A stretch of DNA of 64,000 nucleotides from assembly GCA_047495785.1 (NCBI GenBank), contig JBLDXI010000015.1, positions 1,984,001 to 2,048,000 of the forward strand. Reading direction: 5' to 3'. Positions 457 through 55,700 of the stretch are shown here, one piece after another (positions within the stretch are counted from its first letter, which is position 1; every line of letters starts with the position of its first letter). A model generated the notes under the pieces. The model was not told the DNA's origin and ran no database searches. It saw nothing but the letters and a program-made list of their open reading frames with translations. The stretch is from Lepidodermella squamata. Taxonomy: Eukaryota > Animalia > Gastrotricha. A program made the translations under genes and the position numbers.

Positions 457-530
457 AGGTTCCGGCGGGGTTCGAACCCGCGACCTTCTGCGTGTAAAGC
501 AGACGTGATGAACCACTACACAACGGAACC
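457..530 (-). tRNA. tRNA-Val(TAC), cassette A
   Basis: GGTTCCG/CGGAACC acceptor stem, anticodon arm TCTGC-TT-TAC-AC-GCAGA, GTTCGA T-loop. Confidence 0.93.
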
Positions 531-875
531 TTGATGGAAACAAAACTGCTCGAGCGATTCGAAAATAGGTGAAATATATAAGAATGGAGGAAGAATTCCT
601 GAATCGGTTATCGAAACCTGGTCGAGTCTCGGAATCCGGGCCACTTGAATATCGTTAGGACGCGCCAAAACAATCACTTTGTTTACTCATTCGATTGGAA
701 TTTAAGGATTTTAAACGTATTAATGAAGCACCTTCGGCTTTTTTGAGCACTGATAGTAATTTGCATTTACGTTCAAGTGTCGAACGCACTTTCCATAAAA
801 AATCTATAAATAGTAAAGTGTTATGGCTCGTCGCTAACAATATCAGTTAGGGTCCATTTTTCAAAAAGTTGAAGC

Positions 876-949
876 TGCCCCCTGTGAGGATCGAACTCAC
901 GACCTCCAGATTATGAGACTGGCGCTCTAGCCAACTGAGCCAAGGAGGC
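876..949 (-). tRNA. tRNA-Met(CAT), elongator type, cassette A
   Basis: GCCTCCT/AGGGGGC-A acceptor, CCAGT-CT-CAT-AA-TCTGG arm, GTTCGA T-loop. Confidence 0.93.
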
Positions 950-1020
950 GCTTGTGTTCACCCTTGATCCTATTCTCCTAATCAATTGGGCATTAAATGA
1001 TTGAGGGAAAAAGAGAGCCG

Positions 1021-1092
1021 AGGCCCAGACGGGGATCGAACCCGCGACCTTCTGTTTACAAGACAGATGCTCTACCACTAAGCTACTGAGCC
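1021..1092 (-). tRNA. tRNA-Thr(TGT), cassette A
   Basis: GGCTCAG/CTGGGCC acceptor, TCTGT-CT-TGT-AA-ACAGA arm. Confidence 0.93.
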
Positions 1093-1162
1093 GGCTGATA
1101 GCTGAAAGTTTTGGTGAATTTTTCCTTTGGAATCGATTGATTCAAGAGGATAAATAAGTTAA

Positions 1163-1234
1163 CGACCCAGATGGGACTCGAACCCACAATCTCCGGCTCC
1201 GGAGGCCGACGCCTTACCATTAGGCCACTAGGCC
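1163..1234 (-). tRNA. tRNA-Arg(CCG), cassette A
   Basis: GGCCTAG/CTGGGTC-G acceptor, TCGGC-CT-CCG-GA-GCCGG arm. Confidence 0.93.
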
Positions 1235-1251
1235 GGTGCATGGCTAGCTAT

Positions 1252-1281
1252 TGGCGCTTTAGCCAACTGAGTCAAGGGGGC
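1252..1281 (-). pseudogene. 5' half fragment of tRNA-Met
   Basis: tggcgctttagccaactgagtcaagggggc(gcttgtg) is a diverged copy of the Met 5' half plus its leader. Confidence 0.7.
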
Positions 1282-1941
1282 GCTTGTGATCAAGAATGTG
1301 AAAAATGCACCACTTATTCTTTAATCGAGATGTTATCTTGGTTTGTTAACTATTGATGCTATGAAAATTTGAAAATCAATTCATATTATCATTAAATTGT
1401 CACCAGCAAAGCAAAGCAATCGTGCAATAGGCCATAAATCGGTTTACCATGAACGCTAGCAAGCTAGCCTCAACTTAGCCTCAACTACATTAATTCGGTC
1501 AAAAAAGTCTAAAACCAGCAGTCAGACCATTTTCACTCGGGCGGCATCGAAAACAATTAATTGCCCCAATAAGTCTCGAAACCACAACCGATACCTTCGA
1601 TAGAGCTTTTTGAAATTATAATGAATAAACGAACAGCCCAAATGTGAAATAGAGTGAGTAGAACCTGTTAACAAAATTTAAAATCACAAAATTTAAAGTT
1701 CGACCATCAGGCGAGTTCTCAGGCCAAGATCCATTCAAATAGTGCAACTAATAGCTTACAAATTGAAGTCTTAATTACTCCAAATCGTTGCTTCCGCACG
1801 TCAATCATAAATATCGAATTAAAAATTCTCATAAATTTATAACCATCCTGCTCTTAATCCACAGATATTTAATATGCGAAAGCTGATTTCTGCGGCAGTG
1901 AAATACATTTATTGATTGCAAGCAAATTGAGTTTGACATAG

Positions 1942-7043: not shown

Positions 7044-7165
7044 TTCATAAAAAAAACTGCTCGATCAGGACATGAATATAGAAAGAATTTCCGAATCGGG
7101 AAAATCGGGAAGCGAATCCTAACCACTTGAACATCATCAGGATCCATCTTTCAAAAAGTTGAAGC

Positions 7166-7239
7166 TGCCCCCTGTGAGGATCGAACTCACGACCTCCAGA
7201 TTATGAGACTGGCGCTCTAGCCAACTGAGCCAAGGAGGC
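7166..7239 (-). tRNA. tRNA-Met(CAT), cassette B
   Basis: same sequence as 876-949. Confidence 0.93.
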
Positions 7240-7310
7240 GCTTGTGGTTACTCTGGGTCCATTTCTCATTTCTTAATTTAGCTATCAATGCTGAGGAAAA
7301 AGAGAAGCCG

Positions 7311-7382
7311 AGGCCCAGACGGGGATCGAACCCGCGACCTTCTGTTTACAAGACAGATGCTCTACCACTAAGCTACTGAGCC
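7311..7382 (-). tRNA. tRNA-Thr(TGT), cassette B
   Basis: same sequence as 1021-1092. Confidence 0.93.
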
Positions 7383-7452
7383 GGCTGAAAGCTGAGATTT
7401 TTGATGAATTTTTCCTGTGGAATCGATTGATTTAAGAGGGCAAAAAAGTTAG

Positions 7453-7524
7453 CGACCCAGATGGGACTCGAACCCACAATCTCCGGCTCCGGAGGCCGAC
7501 GCCTTACCATTAGGCCACTAGGCC
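7453..7524 (-). tRNA. tRNA-Arg(CCG), cassette B
   Basis: same sequence as 1163-1234. Confidence 0.93.
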
Positions 7525-7854
7525 GGCTAGAATTTGCAAAGATCAAAAGCCGTCCTGTTGATATGGTGAAGGATCCTCTCTCTGAAAACCGGTGCATGAC
7601 TGGCTAATTCTACCAGAATTAGAGCTTCAAAAAGTGGGAAAGAAATCCGTGGTGTCGTACACCACGTGCCGCAAGGCCTCCTAGAACCTAGCAACCAATG
7701 TTGTAGAGCATATCAACGCCTGGCAAATTAAATCCAAAAACTTTGGGGAAGTAAATGGGAATTCGGCAGGTTTTATAGCAGTATTTTGAGATCGTTAAAA
7801 CTTGGCATGCTAATTATCCGCATTTCTCTTGCAGTCGGTTTTAGATCCCACGTA

Positions 7855-7936
7855 GCTGCTATGCCCGAGTGGTTAAGGGGTCTGACTTGAAATCAGATGC
7901 GGTCTCCGCGCGTAGGTTCAAATCCTACTGGCAGCG
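7855..7936 (+). tRNA. tRNA-Ser(TGA), cassette B
   Basis: 82 nt, GCTGCTA/TGGCAGC-G acceptor, TCTGA-CT-TGA-AA-TCAGA arm, long variable arm GCGG-TCT-CCGC. Confidence 0.93.
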
Positions 7937-8069
7937 AATTATTTTTTATTAAAACCACTTATTAGAACAATTTTCATTGCGCATCTTAATTAGGCTGAAT
8001 TAGTATGAACCGACGAGGGTGCTGAAGTGGTCAAAGCCGCATTCGATGCGTTATCATCGTACTGAAAAA

Positions 8070-25269: not shown

Positions 25270-25760
25270 GCTTCTTAATAAACACCTAAAAAGAGCACAG
25301 AACATTCAAGTCACAATGCGTTATTTTCTCAGGTTTTGAAGTGGAGAAGTTTTAATTGGGCAACAGTTTTTACAACCAACAAACATTGATATTACAAAAA
25401 AATGACAACAGCAACAAAGTCGTGTGATGGTAAGTGTGCAAAATTTTGTCGATTTTCATTCACTCTCTCACATTTTCCATTCACTCACTTTCATATATAT
25501 ATAATAATAATAATAACGATAATATAACATTCAGACGTATAATTTTATCGAAAAATATCATCATCGATCCTGTTTCGGCCAGGTAAAACAAAATAATTTC
25601 TTTTCTGAGATTATTTTTCAGCTAGCTTTCTTTTAAAGCAAAAATTAACTTGAGTTTTTTTGTACGTTTCGTTTCGATTAGTATTGTGCGAAGTAGTTGC
25701 GAGATTGGCATTGCGATTCTACAAATTTTCTGACGCGTATCTTTCAGCTCCAAACTTGGT

Positions 25761-28540
25761 TTAGTTGCCTGTAAAAATGGGAGAATAATGACAAATCAAA
25801 TTAGAATGAGGAAAAAGAAGGAAAATTGGAGATGCCGGGGTTTGAACCCGGGACATCTTACATGCAAAGCAAGCGCTCTACCACTGAGCTACATCCCCAT
25901 ATGACTTCAAGGAACCTGGAGCCTCTTTCAATCGCAATGGAACCTTTCCGAAGTTGGAAAAAGGTTCGACGAGGTTCCGGCGGGGTTCGAACCCGCGACC
26001 TTCTCCGTGTGAAGGAGACGTGATAACCACTACACTACGGAACCTGGATGATGGGTGACACCCAGGGTTCTCAATAAGGTCATTCTCCAAAGCTGGGATG
26101 AAGATAGGAGAAAAAAATAGTTCCCTGACCGGGAATCGAACCCGGGCCGCCGCGGTGAAAGCACGGAATCCTAACCACTAGACCATCAGGGAGGATGAAC
26201 ATGGAACCTAATTGGGTTGTGACCTTCGTTAGGAATTAGGTTCCCATTGTCCGGTCAGGGAACTATTTTTTTCAAAAGTTGAAGCTGCCCCCTGTGAGGA
26301 TCGAACTCACGACCTCCAGATTATGAGACTGGCGCTCTAGCCAACTGAGCCAAGGAGGCGCTTGTGGTCATCCTAGGTCCTATTCTGATTTCCTAATTGA
26401 ACATCGAAGGATTGAAGCTAGGGAAAAGAGAAGCCGAGGCCCAGACGGGGATCGAACCCGCGACCTTCTGTTTACAAGACAGATGCTCTACCACTAAGCT
26501 ACTGAGCCGGCTGATAGCTAAGCCTATCGCTCTAGGACTTAATAGCAGTGATATTTACGATATAAAAAAGGTACAAACCTGCTCCGCAGACGAAAGCATT
26601 GGCGGGCTGGTAGGAGCAGACGCGGCACTTGCCAACACGCGACGCGACATCGCCGCGCTTGACCGTGCTGTTCGGGAAGGTGGCGTCGCTCGCGTACAGC
26701 CAGTACATCATGTAGTCGGGCCAGTAGTGGCAGTACCGATTCGAGTCGCACTCGACGTAGGGCGTATGCGAGTGGTAGCGCAGGCACGAGCCAGGGCTGT
26801 CCAACTGCTGGCCAACACCCGCCGCTCCGATGGCATGCATCAGGAAGGAGTAGCCTTCCCACAGCGACACCCACGACCCGTATCGGTTGCCCTGCGGGCA
26901 CGCCGGCACTTGCGTCGACTGCGAGTGGAACGCCATAACAGTGCCCGGCGCCATGCAAACCGTGCACCGACTGATGTGGTTCATCAACTGCGCCTTATTC
27001 TGCACGATGCCCATCGGCTTGGCGACGCTTGGTTCAATGTCATTGGCGTGTTCGACTTCGTACTGGTTGGTCGTCAGCCAGTAAGACGAGGTGGTTCTTG
27101 AACCCCATGAGCAGACTTCGTTAGCCCCGCAGAACATGGTTGGCTGAGGGTCGAAACGAGGCAAGCAAGAGCCACTGGCGCCTAGATTCTCACCCGCGGC
27201 ACGGCCGTCGTCTTGCAGGTGGAGCAGGGAGTAGCCGGTTGAGATCTGGACGTGGTTTGGCGGGCAGGTTGGCACGGTGCAGCGTTGCGAGTGGATGGCG
27301 TAGACGTAGGCGGAGCATGAGCTGATGTCACGGTTCGGTTCATCTGGGCCTGGGGCACCCATCGGGCCCACCGGACCGTCAGGACCGCAGTTGCCATCCG
27401 GACCGGGTGGGCCAGGTCGGCCAGGGTTGCCAGGGCGGCCGGCAAGGCCCATGTTGCCCTTCTCACCACCCGGGCCTTGGTTACCGCATTGGTCGTCGCC
27501 GATTTCACCAGGAGTACCCGGAGCACCTATAATCATCAATTCATATAGGTTATATCGAGAAAGTTAACTGGATCTTACCTGGTTGACCATCTGGACCAGA
27601 CGGGCCCGGGCGGCCTTCGTCACCGATGTCACCCATTGGGCCAGCCGGGCCAGCACAGCCATCAGCACCCTTATCACCCGGAGCACCTGGGGCACCCTAT
27701 AGACAGACACCGAACTGTTATCGAAACCTTCAAACCTGGGTGGGATGACTTACCGGAGCACCTGGACATCCATCGCGGCCATTGTCACCCGGAAGACCAG
27801 GAATACCATTCGGGCCCTGAAAGAAGTAAGATTATAAGCCAATATCATAGCTAAATTTTTGGGATTTACGCAAGTTCCAGGGGGACCTTGGGGTCCGTCG
27901 ATTCCTGGGTTACCTTGAGGACCTTTGCGGCCTTCCGGACCCTGGCGACCTGGGTCACCTTGATATCCTTTCGGGCCCTATAAGAAATATTGAATATTCA
28001 ACAGCTCGGAAAGCATGTTAGAAAAACTTACAGCGCTGCCATCAAGGCCACGTGGACCAGGGTAACCGGTAGCTCCAGGAGGACCGTTGGGTCCTAGAAG
28101 AAAAATTCAAATGGTAAAAGATCGAAAGACGACGCGAAAAACGTACCTTTATCACCCATGGGGCCCATAGGACCGCAGTCACCCACAGCACCCGGTGGGC
28201 CCATGGGGCCCGGGCCACCAGGTGACCCGCGCTGGTTGAAGCAGTCGCAACGCGTGCAGCTCGCCTCTTCGTTGAACAGCATGTCCATGAACATAACAGC
28301 GCTATCGACGTTCTGCGCACCCTCATCGGCCAACATCGCAGTTTCGATGGCGGACGCTTCTTCGGCCAGGGTTTGCTCGGACGGCGGCCCGGCAGCGGCT
28401 ACGGGCGCCTCCTCCGCGAACGGTTGCTCACCCGGTGGTCCAGCTGCAACTTCGGTCTCTTCAGCCCGAACTGATAGCATGGCGAAAGACAAGACGAGCC
28501 CACATGTCAGCAGTGTTAGCTTCACTACCGACCGCTTCAT
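25761..28540 (-). CDS. short type IV-like collagen chain 3 (~206-aa Gly-X-Y, NC1)
   Basis: MKRSVVKLTLLTCGLVLSFAMLSVRA signal, CTRCDC motif, small Gly-X-Y exons, NC1 exon ~26579-27526. Terminal micro-exon 25761-25768 (G-N-stop) inferred from gtttgt donor at 26578 and ccatttttacag acceptor; unspliced stop would be at 26532. Confidence 0.88.
25827..25898 (-). tRNA. tRNA-Ala(TGC), cassette C
   Basis: GGGGATG/CATCTCC-A acceptor with G3:U70, CTTGC-TT-TGC-AT-GTAAG arm. Confidence 0.93.
25972..26044 (-). tRNA. tRNA-Val(CAC), cassette C
   Basis: TCTCC-TT-CAC-AC-GGAGA arm, GGTTCCG/CGGAACC acceptor. Confidence 0.93.
26121..26192 (-). tRNA. tRNA-Glu(TTC), cassette C
   Basis: TCCCTGA/TCAGGGA-A acceptor, CT-TTC-AC loop; one C>T giving a G:U pair in the anticodon stem. 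Confidence 0.9.
26286..26359 (-). tRNA. tRNA-Met(CAT), cassette C
   Basis: same sequence as the other Met copies. Confidence 0.93.
26437..26508 (-). tRNA. tRNA-Thr(TGT), cassette C
   Basis: same sequence as the other Thr copies. Confidence 0.93.
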
Positions 28541-29746: not shown

Positions 29747-29828
29747 CGCTGCCAGTAGGATTTGAACCTACGCGCGGAGACCGCATCTGATTTCAAGTCA
29801 GACCTCTTAACCACACGGGCATAGCAGC
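29747..29828 (-). tRNA. tRNA-Ser(TGA), cassette D, possibly defective
   Basis: two D-arm substitutions vs other copies (GCCCGTGTGGTTAAGAGG vs GCCCGAGTGGTTAAGGGG), including conserved A14. Confidence 0.7.
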
Positions 29829-29993
29829 TTCGTGAACAATGCAGCATCAGATAGCATATTTATTGTATTTCGCTGCTTCACCTGAATTATACTCGCGGAG
29901 AGATGATTCGATGGAATGTTCCCGGACAGAGGAAACAGTTTGAAACCAATGGTTCTCAACGGGACGGCTTTTTGATCCGTGTTGTTTCAAGCC

Positions 29994-30065
29994 GGCCTAG
30001 TGGCCTAATGGTAAGGCGTCGGCCTCCGGAGCCGGAGATTGTGGGTTCGAGTCCCATCTGGGTCG
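29994..30065 (+). tRNA. tRNA-Arg(CCG), cassette D
   Basis: intact cloverleaf, T-run downstream. Confidence 0.93.
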
Positions 30066-30136
30066 CGATTTTTTGTCCTCGTAAACACACTCATTAGCTC
30101 ACTCTACGAAATCAACGATTAACTTAGCTATCAGCT

Positions 30137-30208
30137 GGCTCAGTAGCTTAGCGGTAGAGCATCTGTCTTGTAAACAGAAGGTCGCGGGTTCGATCCCCGT
30201 CTGGGCCT
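30137..30208 (+). tRNA. tRNA-Thr(TGT), cassette D
   Basis: intact; single D-loop T>C. Confidence 0.92.
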
Positions 30209-30285
30209 CGGCTTCTCTTTTCCCCAACGTCAACCATTCAATCTTCAATTATGCGATGTAAGTAGAATCCAGGGTGACCACAAGC

Positions 30286-30359
30286 GCCTCCTTGGCTCAG
30301 TTGGCTAGAGCGCCAGTCTCATAATCTGGAGGTCGTGAGTTCGATCCTCACAGGGGGCA
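30286..30359 (+). tRNA. tRNA-Met(CAT), cassette D
   Basis: intact cloverleaf. Confidence 0.93.
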
Positions 30360-30431
30360 GCTCCAACTTTTTGACAATGGGAACGTAGTTCCCAAAATAG
30401 GTCACATACCAATTAGGTTCCAGGTTCATCC

Positions 30432-30503
30432 TCCCTGATGGTCTAGTGGTTAGGATTCCGCGCTTTCACCGCGGCGGCCCGGGTTCGATTCCCGGTCAGG
30501 GAA
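30432..30503 (+). tRNA. tRNA-Glu(TTC), cassette D
   Basis: CCGCG-CT-TTC-AC-CGCGG arm, intact. Confidence 0.93.
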
Positions 30504-30571
30504 CCATTTTCCTCCACAATTTTCGATATTCTGCATTACATGATCTTACTGGGTACGCTTGGACTCATCAA

Positions 30572-30644
30572 GGTTCCGTAGTGTAGTGGTTATCACGTCT
30601 CCTTCACACGGAGAAGGTCGCGGGTTCGAACCCCGCCGGAACCT
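30572..30644 (+). tRNA. tRNA-Val(CAC), cassette D
   Basis: intact cloverleaf. Confidence 0.93.
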
Positions 30645-30715
30645 CGTCCAACATTTTTCCAACTATAATAAGGTTCCATTGCAATTAAAAGAGGTCCATT
30701 GTCCCTTAAGATCAT

Positions 30716-30783
30716 ATGTAGCTCAGTGGTAGAGCGCTTGCTTTGCATGTAAGATGTCCCGGGTTCAAACCCCGGCATCTCCA
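30716..30783 (+). pseudogene. tRNA-Ala(TGC) lacking the first four G residues, cassette D
   Basis: atcat-ATGTAGCTCAG instead of catgt-GGGGATGTAGCTCAG; acceptor stem broken, A/B boxes intact. Confidence 0.85.
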
Positions 30784-30936
30784 ATCTTTTTTAAATCCGG
30801 AATTTCGGAAAATTCAATCTCGATTTTCCCCCTATTCTTCCAGAAAGCGCCTAGAGTTTTATATTCCCCCGTTTAGCCCGCACGCTAAACTCTGCTCTAA
30901 TACGCCCATGTGACTTGCCAGGAAGCCGCGGCTCGA

Positions 30937-31956: not shown

Positions 31957-32302
31957 TATATTGATACCGAATGGGTAGACGAACAGCGTATATATCTACT
32001 CGTTAATTATTGAAATTAATTATTCGTTAATTATTGTGAGAAAATGTGACTTCAGACACAGAGACCTAGAGACTTGATTGAAGCGTTGCTTGGGTTTATT
32101 ACGAAATAAAATCCTCTATAAAACTGTCAAGAAATGAATTCAATAAAACATGGTTGCCAACTTCCCAGTGACTTGTTATTCACGTTAAATTGGTGGCGGC
32201 GATAATAAATTCAAAACTATTAAAAAAAATCAACAAGGAAAAAAATCAAGAAGTAACAAAATCGCAATCATTACGATTGGTCTCTTTATCTTCTTCCATC
32301 CC

Positions 32303-32374
32303 GGCCTAGTGGCCTAATGGTAAGGCGTCGGCCTCCGGAGCCGGAGATTGTGGGTTCGAGTCCCATCTGGGTCG
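32303..32374 (+). tRNA. tRNA-Arg(CCG), cassette E
   Basis: intact cloverleaf. Confidence 0.93.
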
Positions 32375-32460
32375 CTACTTTTTTACGCAAGCATCTTTAG
32401 TCAAAGAAACTCGACTCGGCATCAAAATTTCACAGAAAATTAAAAATCCATCAATCAGCC

Positions 32461-32532
32461 GGCTCAGTAGCTTAGTGGTAGAGCATCTGTCTTGTAAACA
32501 GAAGGTCGCGGGTTCGATCCCCGTCTGGGCCT
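32461..32532 (+). tRNA. tRNA-Thr(TGT), cassette E
   Basis: intact cloverleaf. Confidence 0.93.
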
Positions 32533-32575
32533 CGGCTCCTCTTTTCCCCCATTCCCAACATCAGTCATTCAATTA

Positions 32576-33113
32576 CCGTATTCTCCGTAATAGCTTCAGA
32601 GGGCATTGTAACTTCAAAGCTTCGAAAATCGAAAAGGGTTGTTGTAAAGCATGCGACTTCATTGTTTCAAAGCAAGTTTTCAACAGTTGAAACTGAGTAA
32701 AATTTTGAACTAAAGTTAACAGCTTTTCATCAAAATCGAGAACTTCATCGTTCGATAGCGAGTTTTCAGCCATTTTTATGCAAAATATTGAAAATTGAAA
32801 ATTTCAGTTTTTTCAAATGATGGATCCTAGGAAATCGATAGCTACTTTGGCAGTTTTCGTTGCTTAAATTCTCTCACTCAGCTATGTTTCGCCATTTTCT
32901 ATCAAACATGCCCATCAAACGCCTCAGAAATAGAATTTCAAAAGGTTAGGCGCAATTATTTTTAAATGCAATTTTCAAAGTTTGATTTAAAATTTAGAAT
33001 TTAGATCACGGGTAGCTATTGGGGGTATGAGGCTTTATCTAAGGCCTCAAAAGGAGGTTGTAAACGGGACGAGCGGTAATAACAGGTAAATGAAGCTGTT
33101 ACGGAATATACGG
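32576..33113. mobile_element. non-autonomous Tc1/mariner-pogo-type DNA element
   Basis: TA|CCGTATTCTCCGTAATAGCTTCA ... TGAAGCTGTTACGGAATATACGG|TA terminal inverted repeats; empty site ttcaatTAtgcgat in cassette D. Confidence 0.88.
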
Positions 33114-33149
33114 TATGCGATCAAAATATAATCGAGTGTGACCACAAGC

Positions 33150-33223
33150 GCCTCCTTGGCTCAGTTGGCTAGAGCGCCAGTCTCATAATCTGGAGGTCGT
33201 GAGTTCGATCCTCACAGGGGGCA
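33150..33223 (+). tRNA. tRNA-Met(CAT), cassette E
   Basis: intact cloverleaf. Confidence 0.93.
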
Positions 33224-33298
33224 GCCTCATCTTTTTGACAATAGGATCTTAATTCCTAATGAAGGTCACATCCCAAGTAGGTTCCATCATCTTCATCC

Positions 33299-33370
33299 TC
33301 CCTGATGGTCTAGTGGTTAGGATTCCGCGCTTTCACCGCGGCGGCCCGGGTTCGATTCCCGGTCAGGGAA
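33299..33370 (+). tRNA. tRNA-Glu(TTC), cassette E
   Basis: intact cloverleaf. Confidence 0.93.
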
Positions 33371-33438
33371 CCATTTTCCTCCACAATTTTCGATATTCTG
33401 CATTACATGATCTTACTGGGTACGCTTGGACTCATCCA

Positions 33439-33511
33439 GGTTCCGTAGTGTAGTGGTTATCACGTCTCCTTCACACGGAGAAGGTCGCGGGTTCGAACCC
33501 CGCCGGAACCT
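33439..33511 (+). tRNA. tRNA-Val(CAC), cassette E
   Basis: intact cloverleaf. Confidence 0.93.
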
Positions 33512-33585
33512 CGTCGATGATTTTTGAAACCTCGACAAATTTCTTTTTCCCATTAAAACAGGATTTAGGTCCCTTGAAATCATGT

Positions 33586-33657
33586 GGGGATGTAGCTCAG
33601 TGGTAGAGCGCTTGCTTTGCATGTAAGATGTCCCGGGTTCAAACCCCGGCATCTCCA
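33586..33657 (+). tRNA. tRNA-Ala(TGC), cassette E
   Basis: intact cloverleaf. Confidence 0.93.
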
Positions 33658-33727
33658 ACTTTTTCCAACCTATAAACTGATAGCAAATCGCCAAACTTCA
33701 AAGCCAATCTGATGTATAGTTCTAACA

Positions 33728-33801
33728 GGTTCCGTTGTGTAGTGGTTCATCACGTCTGCTTTACACGCAGAAGGTCGCGGGTTCGAACCCCGCCGGAACC
33801 T
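33728..33801 (+). tRNA. tRNA-Val(TAC), cassette E
   Basis: intact cloverleaf. Confidence 0.93.
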
Positions 33802-34208
33802 TTTCAATTTTATTCACTCTCGTATAGTTTTGTACACAAACATTATAGACATATTTTACATAATCTTGGCGATATTTAGTGTTCATGAGAAAAGGGTGCT
33901 ACGCCAGGAGATGGTCAGCTATGATCCATTTGCGCTTAGAGGTTAAGTAAACAAAATATTCTATTCATTTTTTGCTGTAATAGTAAATTATGTGTGTATG
34001 ACAAAAATATACGGTGAAATGAAATCTGTCTCCACAAAAAATGCAAGAAGAAAGCGCAATTGGATATTTCATTTTTATGCTGCAAAACGGGGCGGTGTAT
34101 TTTATTTTGAATTCTTGGAGGGACCAGCCGATGGTTTTTTTTGAGATTTCCGACATTGAAAGGTTGGGACTAGATAATACGGAGAATTTTATTAGACAAA
34201 CCCTGAGT

Positions 34209-44389: not shown

Positions 44390-45160
44390 AAAGCCCTCCC
44401 CGTGAGGGTTCAGGGGACGGTTGACGGCTGGCGATCGGCCTCACGGGCCGACAGATCGGTCGCGAACAACGAACAACCTGCTTTTGTTCAAAAATTCATA
44501 ATTTTCGATGCTACACTAGTTACACACTAGTTGCCATTCATCCCAATCTCTGGCAGTTATTTCTGCTAATTCTAGATCCGCAATTTTGTGAATTTCAGTG
44601 TGCGTCGCATTAACAAGGTTGACTTACGAGGTCTCCCGCGTCTAACTGGCTCCTTTGGGTTTTTAAAATGTTTCACATCAATTTCGAACAAACCAATTTT
44701 AAGAAGACTCCTTTTCAAGCTATCGGTCCAGCGGGTTGGCGGTTTACCGCGAGGCAACCACCAATAACTCGGGTCGACCGCTTTTCAATAATACATAGCA
44801 TTCGCGAGACTTTCAGTGTCGTACTCATCTTGGCGAATAATGTGACCGAAATATTTCAAACGATGTTTTTCGATTATTTCGCTCAATTCAAAAACGTCAC
44901 AGATCAATCTAATATCGATGTTAGGTATATATAATCTGTTAGGTATATATAATCGGTATATAGGTATATATAATCCCATAATGGTTCTAAGCCAGCGCAT
45001 GAAGGTGACATTTAACCTTTGTTCTTGGGCCGGAGTTTGGTTCCATCAGGTTTCACAGGCGTAGGTGACGGTAGGAATTACCACACATTTTAAAATGTTC
45101 AATTTTGTGGTTAGACTAATATGTTTTCTGTTGCAAAACAACTTGTTAAAAGCTCTGTTG
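44390..45160 (-). mobile_element. degenerate RTE-type LINE 3' fragment
   Basis: PTVTYACET, RLNVTFMRWLRTIMG, RLKYFGHI, PRGKPPTRWTD with stops/frameshifts; GC-rich hairpins at 44391-44463. Confidence 0.78.
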
Positions 45161-45219
45161 TTTAGCCAGATTAATTTAATAATTTCATCTGATTAAATAT
45201 ATCTGATCGACGTAGCATC

Positions 45220-46282
45220 ATGGCGAAACTGCACCTGGCCGTATTCCTAGCGATTATCTATCAAACATTAGCAATCAGTAAGTCACATACAATAAGAATA
45301 CTTGTAGGAGAGGTACCTATAGGAGAGGTAAATACTCCATAGATCACTCGCGAAACTTGAGGATATAGAGTTCGCTCTGCGGCTTTTCAAAGTACCTACT
45401 TCATTTTGCCCAAAAATTAGACTACCTGATTAATCCAAATCTTGATCAAGAGTTCACACAAATGTCCTGGAATTGGGTGCCTTTTCTTCCTGTTTGTGAA
45501 GTAGTCTTATTTTTCAGAATCCCCTGAGCGTGAACTGGCAAAGTATCTGATTCGCACAGCTGAAGAGCAGGGTACAGTCGGACGACCTGTCTCAGCTGCG
45601 TAAGCTTGCTTGCAATTTCTTTGTAACAGGATGATTTCAGTAGATCCCTACGTAGTTCTGAAGCTGTCAACGTGACTTTGGGGCTGTATTTGGTTAAAAT
45701 CATCAGCTTAGATTCAAATAATCATGCAAAAATAGCATCGAAACCAACGATGACGTGGAATGATCCAGCTCTGACATGGGATCCATCTCGCTTTGGAAAA
45801 GTCAATTCTATCATGCTGCCGGCCAGGAAGGTTTGGACGCCTGATATCACATTTGTTAACGAGTTAGTTTGCTTTATTTGGCCGATAAATTTGATCCTAA
45901 TTAGTCTACTAATATTAGCTTCAATGGCGGAGCTGCTGATCAGAAGAACAATTTGTTGGATGCCGATGTATCGGTTCTCCCTTACGGATCTGTCATGTGG
46001 ATTTCTCGTCTAAATCACGAAGTACCGTGCATCAAAGCATCCGAAAATATATTTAACTGCACAATTAAAGCTGGCTCCTGGGGTTATGATAATTCACAGA
46101 TGGCTGTCGATTTTCCTGAGGGCTTGGAAAGCATTAACCTGCATGACATGGAACCTATTAGTCCGGGATTGGAACTGTTGGCAACATCTGCGACGTACGA
46201 AGATGCTGAGTATGCCGGGCTCACGTATCGCACGTTCTCATTTACATTTAAGATCGATGTTTCTCGTCTATTGAGGGGTTGA
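45220..46282 (+). CDS. soluble Cys-loop ligand-binding domain, acetylcholine-binding-protein-like
   Basis: signal exon MAKLHLAVFLAIIYQTLAI (45220-45277); RPV, WNDPALTWDP..FG.V..I..P..KVWTPDI.F.N, GSVMW, C...C-TIKAGSWGY; stop directly after the last beta strand, no transmembrane segments. Confidence 0.82.
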
Positions 46283-46579
46283 AGGTTTCCCGGTTCCAAA
46301 TGATTGAACTTTTGTCGCCCCATTTCTGGTTTCACACCGGGAATATTGACCTCGATATCAGGATGGATTTTTTTATTTTACTGTATTTCTTAGAATAGAA
46401 AATAGCCAGTAATTATAAGTAAACTAAATTCTAATTTCTAACTAAAAATAGCTAACACTGCAAAGATAAGATTATGCTTGAAATTGGAATAAACATACGC
46501 GGCTATTTAAATCGAAAGACATCAGCCAAGTATCAAATGCGCCAGTAAAAATTGTAGATTGATGATGTCTTTTCACCCC

Positions 46580-46634
46580 GGCCTAGTGGCCTAATGGGAG
46601 CCGGAGATTGTGGGTTCGAGTCCCATCTGGGTCG
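46580..46634 (+). pseudogene. tRNA-Arg(CCG) pseudogene, cassette F
   Basis: 17-nt deletion (TAAGGCGTCGGCCTCCG) removing the anticodon. Confidence 0.88.
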
Positions 46635-46700
46635 CAACTTTTTTCATCATGAACACATTGGCTCTTCTTCGAAAGTCAAGGATCAGCTCAGCCATCAGCC

Positions 46701-46772
46701 GGCTCAGTAGCTTAGTGGTAGAGCATCTGTCTTGTAAACAGAAGGTCGCGGGTTCGATCCCCGTCTGGGCCT
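46701..46772 (+). tRNA. tRNA-Thr(TGT), cassette F
   Basis: intact cloverleaf. Confidence 0.93.
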
Positions 46773-46848
46773 CGGCTTCTCTTTTTAGCCTATCAACTGA
46801 TAGATTTTAAGCTAGACGATTTGAATAGGATGTAGGGTGATCACAAGC

Positions 46849-46922
46849 GCCTCCTTGGCTCAGTTGGCTAGAGCGCCAGTCTCATAATCTGGAGGTCGTG
46901 AGTTCGATCCTCACAGGGGGCA
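46849..46922 (+). tRNA. tRNA-Met(CAT), cassette F
   Basis: intact cloverleaf. Confidence 0.93.
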
Positions 46923-47005
46923 GCTTCATCTTTTTGAGAGTTAGGATCCTAATTCCGAGCTATTTCCTAACGATGTCACAACCCAATTAGGACCTATGTT
47001 TATAC

Positions 47006-47071
47006 TCCCTGATGGTCTAGTGGTTAGGATTCCGCGCTTTCACCGCGGCGGTTCGATTCCCGGTCTGGGAA
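47006..47071 (+). pseudogene. tRNA-Glu(TTC) pseudogene, cassette F
   Basis: 6-nt deletion in the variable loop/T stem and an acceptor mismatch (TCTGGGAA). Confidence 0.85.
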
Positions 47072-47147
47072 GTATTTTTCTTTCATATTGTCGAAAATTT
47101 TAGAAAATGTGACATCACTAGTGAGAGGGCACCATCGTAGTCACCCA

Positions 47148-47220
47148 GGTTCCGTAGTGTAGTGGTTATCACGTCTCCTTCACACGGAGAAGGTCGCGGG
47201 TTCGAACCCCGCCGGAACCT
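47148..47220 (+). tRNA. tRNA-Val(CAC), cassette F
   Basis: intact cloverleaf. Confidence 0.93.
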
Positions 47221-47294
47221 CGTTGAACATTTTTCCAACTTCGATAAAGGTTCCATTGCCATTAAATGAGCACCCATGTCCCTTGAAACTAAAT

Positions 47295-47366
47295 GGGGAT
47301 GTAGCTCAGTGGTAGAGCGCTTGCTTTGCATGTAAGATGTCCCGGGTTCAAACCCCGGCATCTCCA
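47295..47366 (+). tRNA. tRNA-Ala(TGC), cassette F
   Basis: intact cloverleaf. Confidence 0.93.
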
Positions 47367-47431
47367 CTTTTTCCAACCACGAAACTGATAGGAAATCTCC
47401 ATCCTCAAAGACATGATCTCTAGTATGAACA

Positions 47432-47505
47432 GGTTCCGTTGTGTAGTGGTTCATCACGTCTGCTTTACACGCAGAAGGTCGCGGGTTCGAACCCCGCCGG
47501 AACCT
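47432..47505 (+). tRNA. tRNA-Val(TAC), cassette F
   Basis: intact cloverleaf. Confidence 0.93.
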
Positions 47506-48448
47506 TATCAATTTTATTTTCATCTTCAGTTCTGCGCTGTAGCAATTTTTCGCAAAGTACAACCTTCCTTTCTCGCGATGTTACTTTCTCCCTCTTAAGG
47601 CATCATGCTCCTTCGCAGTAAATTTTGCCTAATAAGCGTTCAATTAAGGGCCCTCTCATTATCACCAGCTCACGGAAAAAACGGATCCACAAGACTTAAA
47701 TCCTAGGACTAGTGATATCTGTTCTCATCACGTACAAATGTACAAGTTTGATACCCAACGCTTGACCCCGCTTCACATCATTTCGAGAATACCTCATTCA
47801 TTCCTGCAAAAATATGCGATAGCATCTTTTTCCCAATTATCTCGCTGAATGGAAACTGCAGAAAAAACCGCAGGCACCTGGAAAGTTCGCACACGCCTTT
47901 CAAAGTCGGTGCTGCTTTTTTTCCTTTCAACGCAAAATAGCGCGTCTAGGCTAGAAGAAACAAGAAAGAAAAGCAAAAAATCACGACAAAAAATGAGCGC
48001 CGCCACGTTTTTTGGCTGCTGCTTCACCGCATTAAATTTCGCGCTCACCTTTGTTTAATCGAAGCCAAGGCGACGCTATTGATTTGCGCGGCGATATACA
48101 TGAATAAGCACTATGTATATTGGAATGAACGCTACTAGCGCGCGCAGTGACAAACAGCGCGATCTGGTGAATTTATAGAAATTATTATTATTATTATTTT
48201 GTTTTGTTCTTGGCGCAACTCATACTCCCCTGCGCACAATATATAACCAACATTATTTACTGTAATTTTTTGCTATTCTACAGCAAAGCCGGAAATTATT
48301 ACTCGGCTAGGTGGGTGCGACCTTCGACAAGCCGCAAAAATAGCCAATATTTGTACTACAATTTGTTCAATTTTAAAAGGTGGCTAATATTCGCAATTTA
48401 ATAATATAGAATTTTTTTTATTAAATCGGCAAAATTTCGTACACGACA

Positions 48449-49377
48449 ATGGATACCGCGATCGTTCTCGATGTGAGAACGGCGCGATCGATCACGAGTT
48501 CCATTCTCTACTCGCAGGTCCCAATTGTTGGGGTTAATCTTTTCTACGACTCGTCGAATCTTCTGTGCCTCGTCGCCCTGAAACACTGGGACTCACGCCG
48601 CGTTTGGCTCTACGACCTTAAACTATACCCCCAACTCATGTTCGAGGGTGAGCTCGGTCGATTGCTGTCAACATCTGAAATTCGAAAAGTCGTCCATTCG
48701 AGTCGAATGTCTAGTAAACAACTGGAAAAAGACTACGGCATTAGGCTGAGAAATGCTTTCGATTGCCAACTCGCCTTCGATTTATTCCGCGAAGATCAGG
48801 GCCTTCCAAAACGACCGGCTAATATTGAAGAGCTCGAGACGTATTTCGTGCCTCAACGTGATTTCTCACGCCTATGTCCGCCCAATATTTTCGAATTGAC
48901 GATACCAGATTTTTGGCGGAGAAGGCCGCTGAGTAAGGCGCTTCAGCTCTACGCGGGTCGAATGACTTTCAGCCTCGTGCCAGATCTCTATCAAACAATG
49001 ACCAGGTAAATATTAAAAAAAATCGGAAAAAATTGGAGATGCCGGGGTTTGAACCCGGGACATCTTACATGCAAAGCAAGCGCTCTACCACTGAGCTACA
49101 TCCCCATGTGATAATTAAGCGCCGCGTTTTATCTCTTATTATTTATCATGTCCGCTATTGTTTGCTCAGTTATATAAACATCATGTATTTTTATTATAAT
49201 AATTTTTTTCGAACAATTATACAATGTTGTAGCACTAAATTTAATTATGTTTTTTACAGAGAATTATCGCCCGAAACAGTTCACCTGTTGGACACGTTCA
49301 CGGATGACAATATCTACCGAGTTCTATCGCAAACCGACCGGTATCGGCGCAATCAGGCGCATTATCGCAAGTGGTGA
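48449..49377 (+). CDS. DEDD 3'-5' exonuclease-like domain protein (EXD1/egalitarian-like), catalytic residues lost
   Basis: LL.....RKVVH, YGIRLRNAFDCQLA, FWRRRPLS..LQLYA; exons 48449-49005, 49260-49377. Confidence 0.78.
49034..49105 (-). tRNA. tRNA-Ala(TGC), solitary intronic copy (G)
   Basis: same sequence as cassette Ala; lies in intron 49006-49259, antisense to host. Confidence 0.93.
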
Positions 49378-49738
49378 TGGCCAATAATAACTCTCGATTT
49401 AACAAATTCTTTCTTCTTCAAAGTTATATCACAAAAGTTTATATAAATGAAACCTCGGACTAACGACGAGTAAAAACGAAGATGTTATTTTAAAGAAATA
49501 ATATCAAAAACAAGAGAAGATAATCACGCATTTTATCATCAATAATATTTGCCTTGAAAAATAGTATGAAAAAAGTGCTGGTAATCACAATTATTTACAT
49601 CCCTTCTAGAAATAATTAATTAAAAATCTTTCATAATATTTCGACAAAAAGTTTTAGACAAATATTGCCGTGCTTCGAATTTTTTTCGTTCTAATAAAAT
49701 TGGTTTTTTTCAACAAGTTTGGCGATGTGACTGGATCC

Positions 49739-52700
49739 TCACGACGGGTAGTAAAGTCTCAGCGAAAGAACGGCTGTCATAGCAGCAGCCGCTGCGCCTA
49801 TGACAAGGACAGCGAGAGGCGAATCGGCGGCGTGCGACAATGGCCCAGCTGTGAGCGCGACGGTGAATTGCGCGAGAAAAACCATCGAACTCACAAGGGC
49901 AATATCAGTGCCGAGGCCGCGCACTTCGCCGACTTTCGGCGGCTGCGGCAGCCCGGTCTGTTGGCTTGACGGAATTTGCGAGTAGCTATTGTTGCCTTCT
50001 GGGTCTAAGGTATTGCTGTCCTGTGACTGCAACGGCGCGCGTTCGCCCTGGTCGGTTGGCAGTTTTTCGAACATTTGATGCGAGTGGTATTTACCGATTA
50101 ATATGTACGGCATCGTGAATAGCGTCGAGTACATAAGGCCGGCGGTTAGTGACAGGAAAATTGCGGCCCATTTCGCTTGAATAAGCACCACTAACACCAG
50201 ACCGCAGCTATAAAGCGAAGGGCCAAGGGCGTAGGTTAACCGAAGGCCTAAAAATAAAAACATTAAAATTTAATTCTGAAAAAGAGGTTCATTTTTTTAA
50301 TTTTTGATATAAATAAATATAAAATTAAATTTTTTTCAATTATTCAAACTTAAATTTTGTAATTTTATCATTTTACAATTTTTATTCATTTTTGATTATT
50401 TATATCATTTATTTATTTTTATTTTCAACTGACCTAGTTTTTTGTAAACTCTTTCGGCGAATAGCGAGTAGATGCAGCATGTGAATGAGTAAAGGGACAT
50501 GCCGCAAGCTCCGAATCTGACTCCCTCCTCATACGTAAGTCTGGCCGGTGTTCCATAGGCTGCGGTTGCTTCACCCTCGAACACGATTTCACCACAGAAA
50601 TCGGTGAAATAAAGCGAGTAGCAAACCAGACTCATCCATGAAAAGTAATTAGTAAGACACACGAGAGCAACACTGCGCGGCATGCGCTTTATTGAGCGCA
50701 AATAGGTCAAGAAGGTCGGCTCTTTCGGCTCATTAGCCATAACCTTCAATAAAAAGTAAAAAACATTATTTTAATAAAGGTTAAATTAAACGGAAAGATA
50801 GCAAATGCAATTAAAAGCAATGCAATAGTAAAAGCGAGAGTTTGTTAGTGCTGAAAAAATGCTGAAAAATGAAGCAGTATAATTTTTAGTGAATTAACAT
50901 TTCCATTTTCGTCAAGCTCTTCTCCGAACACATCTTCATCATCACCGATAACAGCTTCATCTTCTTCGTTTTTATCAGTTTCATCCTTACCATTTGTCGA
51001 TGGAAAAAAAACAAAAAAATTCAGAACGTGAGTAAAAATAACAAGAAAATTCAAACGTGATTTCAAAAATTTTAAGGCGGACTTTTTATTTCTACCTGAA
51101 CTTTTGGTAGATCCTGGGACTTTGAAAATCATTTTTGGACCATCGGGGGATTAAAATTTGTTTACCTTTGGAGCATTAAGGCGATCAAGCTCGGTTTTGT
51201 CGATGCTTTTAGTTCGCGATACATCACTCTGCGGGCCGCTTTGCCCTGACTGCGAGCCATATTGCATCGACTGCATCGACTCCTCGCGGCTGATATCAGC
51301 CGCCTCGCTCTGAATCTTGAACTGCTGCATGGCATCGCTGCAGCTTTTCGTCGCCATAAGCGGCAATCTTTCCGGCTGTTTCGGCTGAGCCTTAATCGCA
51401 AGGCCACTCTGGAGTTTTCGCGACATTTGCCGGTTCAACTTACGATACGAACCCTGGCGGCCTTGTTGTCGCAATTTTTCCAACTCCTTCTTCGCCGCTT
51501 CTTGCGTTTCGTTGGCAATACTCTGCAAATCGCGCCATTCTTCCAGCGTCGGTTCTTGAAATACGAAAATTGTACTGCAAACGAAGAGAACGAACAACAC
51601 GCCGATTATTGTATAGACAGTTTTGAGGTGTTGGAAAAACGTTGAAGCTGTTTCAGCCGCTGAGCCGCCCATGTCGATGCCGCCCATCAAATAACCGATC
51701 GTGCCACCCAGGCCGGCTGAGACTGTGAAGGTCCTCAGGCCGAGTCGGTGGTCCTCGGGTAGGCAGACGTCGAGTAAATAAGTCCGGCAGGGTGACTGGG
51801 ATGCATCGCAGCCGAAATCCATTAGAATGACGCCGAGAATGGCCATTCCGATCGGGAGTTGGTGAACAGCTGCTGAGGTTGGCGGCAGAGGCGTTGTTGT
51901 ACCTTGGATTTCACCGCCTGACATGGCTGCTGCTAGGTTGGCTAATGGATCAGGGGTGGTTAGGTGTTCTGCTGGTCCGAATAAGTCCTGGTCGTAGATG
52001 GAGGGTCCATCTGCCTCTCGGCCTTGAGTCGAGGTTGACGTCGATGAATGCGTTGATGTTGTGGCGTATTCTGTTGTTGTACTGAAGGTTGAGGTCGAGG
52101 TAAAAAATTCTTCGTCTTCCAACTCATCTGCAAAAGAAAGAAGGAAAATGAATCGACAAATCATACAATCTGTGTATCACTGTTAACAATTATTCGTTAC
52201 CCATAGTCCCATCAACTATCAACTCCCAAGAATTCAAAAATAATCGCTGCCAGTAGGATTTGAACCTACGCGCGGAGACCGCATCTGATTTCAAGTCAGA
52301 CCCCTTAACCACTCGGGCATAGCAGCTTTATGTACTATGCAGTATCAGACGACGTATAGATCATATAGGTCATAGCTTTCACTCGCGGAGAGATGATTCG
52401 AAGGAATGTTCTCAGACAGAGGAAACAGTTTGAAATCATTCACTCAACGAGGAAGCTTTTTTGATCATAATATTTGAAGCCGGCCTAGTGGCCTAATGGT
52501 AAGGCGTCGGCCTCCGGAGCCGGAGATTGTGGGTTCGAGTCCCATCTGGGTCGCTACTTTTTTCGCCCAGGTCAAAGAAACTCGATTCAGCAGCAACAAT
52601 TGACAGAATGGTCATCAATCAGCCGGCTCAGTAGCTTAGTGGTAGAGCATCTGTCTTGTAAACAGAAGGTCGCGGGTTCGATCCCCGTCTGGGCCTCGGC

Positions 52701-55700
52701 TCCTCTTTTTTGCCTATCAACTGATAGATTTTAAGCTAGACGATTTGAATAGGATCTAGGGTGACCACAAGCGCCTCCTTGGCTCAGTTGGCTAGAGCGC
52801 CAGTCTCATAATCTGGAGGTCGTGAGTTCGATCCTCACAGGGGGCAGCTTCAACTTTTTGACAATGGGATCCCAATTCCTAACGAAGGTCACATCCCAAT
52901 TAGGTTCCATCGTCATCCTCCCTGATGGTCTAGTGGTTAGGATTCCGCGCTTTCACCGCGGCGGCCCGGGTTCGATTCCCGGTCAGGGAACTACTTTTCT
53001 CCTATTTTTCTCGAACTGCTAATATCGCCGATTTATCCAAGACAAGTAGCCAGTGTTTACTTTTAGATTGTTGCCGTGTCGAAAAATTGGTCAAAATTTT
53101 ACGCCTGTCGAACATCTTAGTCTGGATATGCAGTGTCAAAGTCCAACTACTTGTTGCTGGGTCGGTCGCGATAGTGGGGCTGGTCGGGTTGGTGGGTGTG
53201 ATTTTTTTTCACACTATGTTAATCAATTGATAGAATCGCGTGCTGCCAAGCCCCATTGATCCCATTGATGCTATCATATCGACCATCAGAGCAACACGTA
53301 GTTGGACTTTGACTCCGCAAAATCCGGCCTAAGATGAATGGCAAATGCCCCCGAATTAGTATTTTCGTAATAAAGGTCGCCGCTGCATACGAATGATCAT
53401 GCCGATAATAATTTGAAGGAAATGTTTTCTATCTGAGATCTGCTAAGCACCTCTATGTTGGGACGCCAAGGAAATTGCATGTGGGGGTAAATGGGCCGGA
53501 AAAACACCTCCTCGCCGCTGGTTTCACATAAAAAATTATTTTTTCTATTCATTTTTTAAGGATTGGAGCAATTTTTGGTACTTGCACTACAACCCACGTA
53601 GTGAAATAGCGTAATAGCAATGCGGAAAAGTGATTTAATCTTTCTTCAAAGGCAATGAATTAATTGTTTTTTTATGTGGTTTCGAAACTGGGATATTTCG
53701 ACCTAAAATTTGGAGCGATACCAGTGACACGACAGTATTGAAAACCTATTTTTTCGGGCAATTTACCGAAATGGTAATTCTTTCACAGAAATTATGCTTC
53801 AGTGGGACTTCTAAAACTGTTGCCAGATTGGTTTCTTGAAAAAAGCTTCAATTTGCACTTACTAGATGACGTTTCGTTAGGACTAGCTGTTGTTGTCGTA
53901 GTAGTGGTCGTAGTCTTTGGCCTGCGTGCTTTTGTCATTGCCGGGAAAAATATCGGCCCTTCAGCCGCTCGTCGTCTCTGGACATTTCTTTTCCGCACAC
54001 TGTAACTGTCAACCTGCGGTCGAGCAAACTCGGGCCGAACAGTCGTAAAACCGGGTATAACCTGGCCGTCCGCGCTGTGGTTCCGGGCGTATTGTTCCAT
54101 TATGCTGGCTTCAGTCTTTTGCGCTACGGATACGGCTGATCCGATGAGGGCCAGGCCGAGCAGGACGATGAGTGATAGGGCGACGATGAAGGGGCGACGG
54201 CGGCCGAATCGCGAGTTGCAGGCGTCGGAGAGTGAGCCGAATACGGGTGTGACGAAAACGCCGAGAATTGGCGAACAGCCCCATACCATCGACGTGAAGT
54301 AGGTTGGGGTGCCGAGCAGCCGGAGAAGAGGCGATACGAAGGCAGTTTCAGCGGAATAACCTGCAAAAATAAAGCGACAGTTAGTTGACCCCAAAGCCAA
54401 ATTCACAAGTTAGCGATAAAAGAATTTAAGAAGGGCAATTCGAATATGATTGATGACGAATTTAGAACAATAAAGAAAGGTTCCGGCGGGGTTCGAACCC
54501 GCGACCTTCTGCGTGTAAAGCAGACGTGATGAACCACTACACAACGGAACCTGTTACATCAGATACAGGCCTTAGAAGTTTGACAGTTTCATATCAGTTT
54601 ACTGGTTAAAAATATTGGAGATGCCGGGGTTTGAACCCGGGACATCTTACATGCAAAGCAAGCGCTCTACCACTGAGCTACATCCCCACATGATCTCAAG
54701 GGTCATGGATCCACTTTTGATGGCAATTGAACCTTTTCAAAGTAGGCAAAAAGTTCGACGAGGTTCCGGCGGGGTTCGAACCCGCGACCTTCTCCGTGTG
54801 AAGGAGACGTGATAACCACTACACTACGGAACCTGGATGAGTCCGATCGTACCCTGTAAGATTAAGGCAATGATCATGAGTTTCTAGATCCAGAATTTCG
54901 AAAAGTGTGGAGAAAAATAGTTCCCTGACCGGGAATCGAACCCGGGCCGCCGCGGTGAAAGCGCGGAATCCTAACCACTAGACCATCAGGGAGGATGAAC
55001 CTGGAACCTAATTGGGATATGACACTCTTTAGGAATTAAGATCCTATTGACAAAAAGATTGAAGCTGCCCCCTGTGAGGATCGAACTCACGACCTCCAGA
55101 TTATGAGACTGGCGCTCTAGCCAACTGAGCCAAGGAGGCGCTTGTGGTCACCCTAGATACTATAGTCTTTTCCTAATTGAACTATCGATTGATTGATGCT
55201 AGGGGTAAAAGAGAAGCCGAGGCCCAGACGGGGATCGAACCCGCGACCTTCTGTTTACAAGACAGATGCTCTACCACTAAGCTACTGAGCCGGCTGATTG
55301 ATGAACTAATCGATGATTTTCGAAAAAGAGCCCATATTTTTATGAAGACGAAAAAGTAGCGACCCAGATGGGACTCGAACCCACAATCTCCGGCTCCGGA
55401 GGCCGACGCCTTACCATTAGGCCACTAGGCCGAGTTCATCAGACTTCATCCGAAAAAGTTATGTTCTATTCCTGCAACATATTCAGGTTACTTCAAGTTA
55501 TTAAGGTTATAAGTATAGGCTACTGTATGCCCTAGAACATTTCAGCCTTAAAAATTGTCAAAGTGGTATATTGGGACCCTCTAATCTGAAGTTAGGCCAG
55601 TCTAATTATTTGACCTCTAGGTCGGTCATTCGAAATAAATTCAAAATAAATTCATGTCTTCAATTGGGGCAGTACGGTATAGTGTAAAATTAGTCTTTAG

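Follow-up and report, generated by a model that had tools for sequence, protein, structure and literature searches.

We analysed a 64,000-nucleotide window of contig JBLDXI010000015.1 (C15 hereafter) of the gastrotrich Lepidodermella squamata (C15:1984001-2048000; genome 121 Mb, 151 contigs), in which transfer RNA (tRNA) genes recur in groups, called cassettes here, that share one gene order. ARAGORN finds 44 tRNA genes in the window, and Rfam gives 46 tRNA matches (50-72 bits), the extras being a partial Ala (30716-30778) and a decayed Glu (47006-47071). The genes form eight loci, labelled copies A, B, C, D, E, F, H, and I, plus one solo Ala (Table 1). At all eight loci the order is Ser(TGA, opposite strand)-Arg(CCG)-Thr(TGT)-Met(CAT)-Glu(TTC)-Val(CAC)-Ala(TGC)-Val(TAC), with zero shuffling, and none of the eight copies carries the full eight-gene set. 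A first-pass annotation of this stretch, made from its letters alone, had described the same recurrent order, never complete and never rearranged, and ARAGORN and Rfam agree with that description in all eight loci. Genome-wide, a first-look count gives ~14,660 tRNA candidates.

The tRNA bodies are identical across copies or differ by 1-2 bases, and the spacers within copies (62-93 bp) are homologous and mostly 58-85% alike, as the first-pass annotation had also noticed. A T-run terminator (≥4 T within 10 nt downstream) follows 41 of the 44 ARAGORN genes. With a canonical cloverleaf and a T-run of its own, each such gene is a predicted independent RNA polymerase III (Pol III) gene, and the copies, in which different isoacceptor genes lie <1 kb apart, fall within the published definition of a tRNA cluster (PMC2888827). 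Within the window the copies are non-tandem, lie in both orientations and have single-copy genes between them, again as first described, and neither ARAGORN nor self-BLAST finds head-to-tail units there, i.e. the window holds no tandem array. Self-BLAST of the window places all homology inside the cassettes, with the left flank of copy F as the sole exception. The starts of the tRNA genes are spaced ~145 bp in all copies (a 73-bp gene plus a 62-93-bp spacer), a distance near nucleosome size.

A cyclic unit confined to one chromosome region

Beyond the window, our census covered C15:1.60-1.80 Mb and contig C75, which together hold 16 loci of the same tRNA genes. At 7 loci located 200-380 kb upstream of the window, Val(TAC) reads through into Ser(opposite strand)-Arg-Thr-Met, and complete, cyclically permuted units are present over that same distance. 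The longest upstream loci comprise ~2 units head to tail, with a period of ~1.5 kb (C15:1.62-1.78 Mb). Because the upstream loci cross the Val(TAC)-Ser junction, the window copies are arbitrary arcs of one cycle, e.g. Thr to Ala, Ser to Glu, or Arg to Val(TAC), and, being permutations of a single cyclic unit, they have no ends in common. Such a pattern is not expected of a transposon with fixed termini. The unit of ~1.3 kb proposed in the first pass gives way to a cyclic one, with a period of ~1.5 kb and no ends.

The spread of the cassette is strictly regional. In the whole genome, the exact Thr-to-Met junction is found at 24 places, 22 of which fall within 746 kb of one contig (C15:1,619,981-2,366,134); the remaining two are on C75 and on C18, the latter with an unrelated spacer. 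Likewise, the top-scoring cassette matches genome-wide are found only on C15 (mostly 1.62-2.38 Mb, with two near 1.0 Mb) or C75. The choice between local and genome-wide spread, which had been left to a search of this kind, falls on the local side. The exact Thr-to-Met junction pattern has no match in Joint Genome Institute (JGI) metagenome contigs, a search that misses any junction with even one substitution. Other contigs hold many identical Ser(TGA) genes (e.g. C29:0.76-1.14 Mb), which suggests other tRNA fields of different unit composition. In addition, two tRNA-Leu(TAG) genes, inverted tail to tail and flanked by palindromic sequence, occur in both haplotypes (C15:1688511-1688744 and C75:48501-48736).

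The DNA around the cassettes was compared by BLAST after masking the cassettes themselves. The 1.4-kb segment to the left of copy F, which we call flank X, is 78-83% identical to C15:1694624-1695990 and to C15:1773619-1775049 (inverted). Genome-wide it has three copies plus the one on the haplotig, and each adjoins a cassette. Judged by eye, its reading frames resemble the ligand-binding domain of Cys-loop receptors, and its copies probably represent fragments of pseudogenes. Upstream there are also tandem duplications, with periods of ~5.7 and 8.4 kb, in which cassettes sit at matching offsets and flanks are 64-86% identical. The first-pass annotation had named large segmental duplications with homologous flanks at all copies as evidence that would speak against a mobile module; such flanks accompany copy F and several nearby loci, not every copy.

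Homology to a reference dimer of the unit ends ≤13 bp from the last tRNA gene at 32 of 50 locus ends, and over the 60 bp past most ends, similarity to the spacer that should follow does not exceed that of shuffled sequence. The internal spacers, for their part, always have a partner that is at least 68% identical (typically 81-90%). We favour the explanation that the copies are old, that unanchored outer DNA has decayed, and that internal spacers have been kept alike by exchange anchored in the identical tRNA genes; detectable homology would then stop at the outermost tRNA gene because selection and conversion preserve the genes and the spacers between them.

Exchange among copies is also visible in the spacers, since the closest relative of a locus differs from one spacer to the next, with patches of 95-99% identity in a background of 58-85%. 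For example, the Glu-Val spacers of copies D and E are 0.98 identical and the Thr-Met spacers of F and H 0.95, and upstream, patches of 0.98-0.99 are common to loci 20-100 kb apart. In a rough, Sawyer-type runs test of the Met-to-Ala segment (13 copies, 155 polymorphic sites, 500 permutations), the longest concordant run spans 52 sites, whereas the permutations give 22.6 on average, 30 at the 95th percentile, and 46 at most (global P below 0.002). Pairs with P ≤ 0.01 number 9 of 78, and some of these are ~300-400 kb apart.

The Glu anticodon is TTC in all window copies and CTC in 9 of 10 upstream copies (C15:1.62-1.80 Mb), a two-base difference that amounts, by the predicted anticodons, to an isoacceptor switch sorted by region. 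Position 5 of Arg likewise differs by region, and together the regional Glu and Arg variants support local homogenisation or local copying. The Ser(TGA) genes, which are identical on unlinked contigs, point to purifying selection on the tRNA bodies; body identity does not by itself require conversion. In one unit, the Val(TAC) slot is filled by a Val(CAC) sequence (C15:1740129-1740204), a sign that conversion may have taken place between this unit's two Val genes.

The protein-coding genes of the window include collagen IV-like, gelsolin, EML, peritrophin-type chitin-binding, and ankyrin proteins, whose closest named homologs are ~30-40% identical (annelid, chelicerates, insects). Weak reverse-transcriptase-like frames, i.e. 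retroelement remnants, lie beside copies E and F (34318-35214 and 44572-45000). Table 1 also lists two miniature inverted-repeat transposable elements (MITEs).

Table 1. Cassette copies and neighbouring features, in window coordinates (position 1 is C15:1984001)
Feature	Position	Strand	Description
Copy A	452..1288	-	Arg-Thr-Met, 344-bp gap, Val(TAC); lacks Glu, Val(CAC), Ala, Ser
Copy B	7114..7937	-	Ser(opposite strand)-Arg-Thr-Met; Ser-Arg spacer widened to 330 bp
Three short collagen IV-like genes	23233-28348 and 11269-12674		Tandem pair kept in related species (L032)
Copy C	25822..26519	-	Thr-Met-Glu-Val(CAC)-Ala; between two tandem collagen IV-like genes
Copy D	29738..30789	+	Ser(opposite strand)-Arg-Thr-Met-Glu-Val(CAC)-partial Ala
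Copy E	32300..33802	+	Arg-Thr-(MITE)-Met-Glu-Val(CAC)-Ala-Val(TAC)
MITE in Thr-Met spacer of copy E	32574..33115	.	25-nt inverted ends
Flank X	45158..46588	+	Non-tRNA segment with Cys-loop receptor-like reading frames; adjoins copy F
Copy F	46577..47532	+	Arg remnant-Thr-Met-decayed Glu-Val(CAC)-Ala-Val(TAC)
Solo tRNA-Ala(TGC)	49023..49119 (gene 49033-49106)	-	Identical to cassette Ala
Transporter host gene, sugar-transporter-like MFS	51151..55912	-	Exons ~55912-55714, 54360-~53966, ~51975-51151
Copy H	52243..53003	+	Ser(opposite strand)-Arg-Thr-Met-Glu; between transporter exons 2 and 3, antisense to host gene
MITE beside copy H	~53113-53337		~225 bp, ~46-nt inverted ends; in transporter intron
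Transporter intron 1	54361..55713	-	GTAAGT...GCAG, 1353 bp
Copy I	54477..55436	-	Arg-Thr-Met-Glu-Val(CAC)-Ala-Val(TAC); in transporter intron 1, host strand

Transposon marks and differences between haplotypes

We searched 250 bp outside each end of every locus for terminal inverted repeats (TIRs) and target-site duplications (TSDs), and compared the results with shuffled controls. No inverted or direct repeats beyond those of the controls are present at any window copy, in line with the lack of TIRs and TSDs already noted in the first pass. Exceptions exist only outside the window, namely an unrelated Leu-Leu palindrome and a marginal case at C15:1696006 (29 versus a shuffled maximum of 23). 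Direct repeats at the cassette ends are at chance level, and short TSDs would have eroded at this age. A search for shared termini is negative as well: no terminal sequence is common to the 49 outer flanks, which match only in tRNA remnants, in the first bases after the terminator, and in flank X.

The two MITEs of the window serve as positive controls for how a mobile element looks in this genome. The MITE of copy E (~540 bp) has at least 40 copies that are ~75-85% alike and lie on many contigs; that beside copy H also has at least 40 copies on many contigs, which are 96-100% identical, and its family is probably still active. Since both show clear TIRs and occur on many contigs, mobile elements of comparable and younger age are easily recognised here, and the cassette does not resemble one. 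A short interspersed nuclear element (SINE)-like tRNA retroposon, made from one Pol III transcript with an A-rich tail, was considered and rejected on account of the several genes, their own terminators, the conserved spacers, and the antisense Ser. The first-pass annotation had already argued from the separate terminators and the antisense Ser against simple retroposition, and these do exclude it.

Contig C75 is the alternative haplotype of C15:1.657-1.707 Mb (94-97% identical), and over the ~50 kb aligned all six cassette loci are found in both haplotypes. Over that length no whole cassette is present in one haplotype and absent from the other. A 630-bp haplotype-specific deletion inside a cassette removes a decayed Glu, Val(TAC), and Ser (C75:62304-62334 versus C15:1702681-1703292). 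At its junction is a short palindromic filler, which repeats the neighbouring sequence in inverted form, as template switching or hairpin repair would leave it. Elsewhere, a 1.66-kb insertion between haplotypes disrupts Val(CAC), and ~224 bp with a Met gene are present in C15 and absent from C75. Present-day dynamics are erosion rather than new insertion.

Copies within a transporter gene and empty sites in a related species

The gene around copies H and I was resolved exon by exon against P0018, a 549-residue MFS transporter of a related organism. The window frame at 55912-55715 matches residues 1-68 of P0018 (84% identity), that at ~54400-53966 matches residues 57-203, and that at ~51975-51163 residues 269-532; in this genome, P0018 matches these transporter exons only. 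Exon 1 was assigned by the direct comparison, as Pfam finds no match to exon 1 alone. Read on the minus strand, intron 1 has a GTAAGT donor next to exon 1 and a polypyrimidine-rich GCAG acceptor next to exon 2, and across it the reading frame follows that of the relative codon for codon. Copy I is therefore inside intron 1 of the transporter, and copy H probably lies in the intron between exons 2 and 3. As such, the location of cassettes inside protein-coding genes, as claimed in the first pass, is established for copy I and is probable for copy H.

P0018 is encoded on a 7.8-kb metagenome contig (L031) that is colinear with window positions 58594-49742 over three genes, at 71-77% DNA identity. 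On this contig, which has no tRNA gene, the transporter is one uninterrupted frame, and intron 1 is exactly absent from that frame. Further contigs from the same kind of samples (L032-L035) carry the tandem pair of collagen IV-like genes with 335 bp between them, and over as much as 18.8 kb they hold no tRNA gene. The same pair is ~1.4 kb apart in the window, with copy C between, and the stop codon of the upstream gene is 24 bp from copy C. The matching sites of copies C, H, and I are thus empty in the relative, and this is a real presence/absence difference, which inversions alone could not produce. Gain or loss of cassettes at pre-existing sites did occur at the DNA level. Within non-coding DNA, none of the empty sites can be aligned.

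Contig L031 also lacks several small, cassette-free introns of the window. Over the three neighbouring genes (window 49742-58594), at least five introns are missing from L031, of which two bear cassettes and the others are small, and intron turnover between the two lineages appears to be high. Because small cassette-free introns are missing too, precise intron loss in the relative may have removed copies H and I. The difference between the species may be a gain here or a loss in the relative; the intergenic copy C is free of the intron-loss confound. Near copies D and E there is a single case of broken synteny, i.e. the relative's PAP2 neighbour of the collagen pair has its ortholog on C19 here.

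Origin of the cassette copies and comparison with known systems

The account that we consider best, with a probability of about two in three, is a cyclic tRNA array that spread by local duplication at the DNA level, eroded, and was shaped by selection and gene conversion. The starting point would be the cyclic, ~1.5-kb repeat unit of eight tRNAs, in which every tRNA gene is a Pol III gene in its own right and carries its own terminator. Local DNA duplication of a generic kind would then have scattered pieces, tandemly as well as interspersed and facing either way, over ~750 kb of one chromosome region, with a copying step that was most likely based on replication or repair. Erosion would have followed, through internal deletions, transposon insertions, and the decay of single genes. 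Meanwhile, purifying selection would hold the tRNA bodies identical and short-tract gene conversion would patch the spacers.

Several observations pull the other way. No homologous flank is detectable for the window copies other than F, and we infer the duplication origin of these seven from their neighbours. The borders of homology at tRNA genes could reflect a breakpoint preference at tRNA genes instead of decay, and subfamily structure in the Glu-Val spacer can inflate the outcome of the runs test. Furthermore, the position of copies C, H, and I between ancestral neighbours calls for the insertion of a short piece (0.7-1.4 kb), not the usual outcome of classical segmental duplication. In a related reading, Pol III-bound tRNA genes would be the points at which template switching during replication, or the repair of breaks, begins and ends the copying of array pieces into nearby sites, which would account for the tRNA borders of most pieces. 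Such insertions may also have given rise to introns or enlarged them, since copies H and I sit in two introns that the uninterrupted gene of the relative lacks. We regard this reading as tentative and rather unlikely. If true, it would constitute a transposon-free, local copy-and-insert route for tRNA genes, and possibly a route of intron gain.

Spread as a discrete mobile module, the proposal of the first-pass annotation, is not borne out. The cassette as cargo of a non-autonomous DNA transposon, or as another self-copying module, would fit the empty sites of copies C, H, and I in the relative and the position of copy I within an intron, and we nevertheless find it very unlikely: no TIR or TSD rises above the shuffled controls, the 49 flanks have no common end and the ends are cyclic permutations, and copies are confined to ~750 kb of one contig, in contrast to the genome-wide MITEs of similar and younger age with their clear TIRs. 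Nor do the haplotypes differ by a whole cassette, and non-tRNA DNA (flank X) was duplicated along with the tRNA genes. The cassettes make up a dynamic tRNA gene cluster of the conventional type and are no new kind of mobile element.

If extrachromosomal circles had been excised from a tandem tRNA array, opened at arbitrary positions, and taken up where chromosomes broke, the pieces would be cyclically permuted, in either orientation, free of TSDs and TIRs, and inserted between ancestral neighbours, all as seen here. However, the capture of free circles should not stay within 750 kb of one contig, and flank X is non-array DNA that was copied along with the array, so that this origin is unlikely. 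The breakage of one ancestral tandem array by inversions, with no duplication, would account for both orientations, for the single chromosome region, and for the arbitrary ends in the cycle, and the synteny break near copies D and E, with the PAP2 ortholog on C19, is in its favour. It cannot place pieces in the intron of an intact gene or between genes that are adjacent in the relative, and duplicated flanks are present; as a sole mechanism it is refuted by copies C, H, and I, and we rate it as quite improbable overall, although inversions may have contributed. An assembly artefact, i.e. a tandem array that was collapsed or mis-joined, is hardly credible. Collapse or mis-joining of the copies is unlikely because their spacers differ enough (15-40%); the flanks are unique, the coding exons around copy I are colinear with the gene of an independent relative, and a separately assembled haplotig has the same loci.

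Heterogeneous tRNA clusters are familiar from the irregular Drosophila 42A cluster and from human chromosomes 1 and 6, and tandem multi-tRNA repeats from the Xenopus 3.18-kb tDNA repeat and the Entamoeba arrays. As in these tandem repeats, and in that at human 1q23.3, a multi-tRNA unit of fixed order is repeated here, with ~2 units head to tail 200-380 kb upstream of the window. In contrast to them, the units in the window are non-tandem, short pieces in both orientations. The human 1q23.3 locus has been described as a tandem repeat of tRNA genes (PMC4041453).

A parallel to a locally duplicated array comes from animal nuclear tRNA clusters, which are heterogeneous, unstable, and locally duplicating (Bermudez-Santana et al. 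2010, PMC2888827), and from the finding that tRNA gene copies evolve in concert (PMC4981973). The cassettes resemble such clusters in having different genes <1 kb apart, mostly parallel and predicted to be independent Pol III units (PMC2888827); local duplication as the main suspected origin, instability with fast turnover, and concerted evolution are further likenesses (PMC2888827, PMC4981973). They differ in that a fixed eight-gene cyclic unit can be traced here through dozens of pieces over ~750 kb, and in that these pieces are interleaved with and inside single-copy genes at sites that are empty in a relative. In yeast, breakpoints of segmental duplications occur at tRNA genes, which stall replication forks, and the duplications are replication-based (Payen et al. 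2008, PMC2518615). That system shares with ours duplication that is DNA-level, local, and transposon-free, along with breakpoints associated with tRNA genes, given that homology here ends at tRNA borders and that one deletion has a templated palindromic filler. In our region, by comparison, such a copying mechanism is a putative one.

The region is a clear, traceable example of an animal genome that builds and scatters a large tRNA gene field. As such, it is useful for the study of tRNA gene turnover, of anticodon switching (Glu TTC/CTC), and of instability at Pol III genes.

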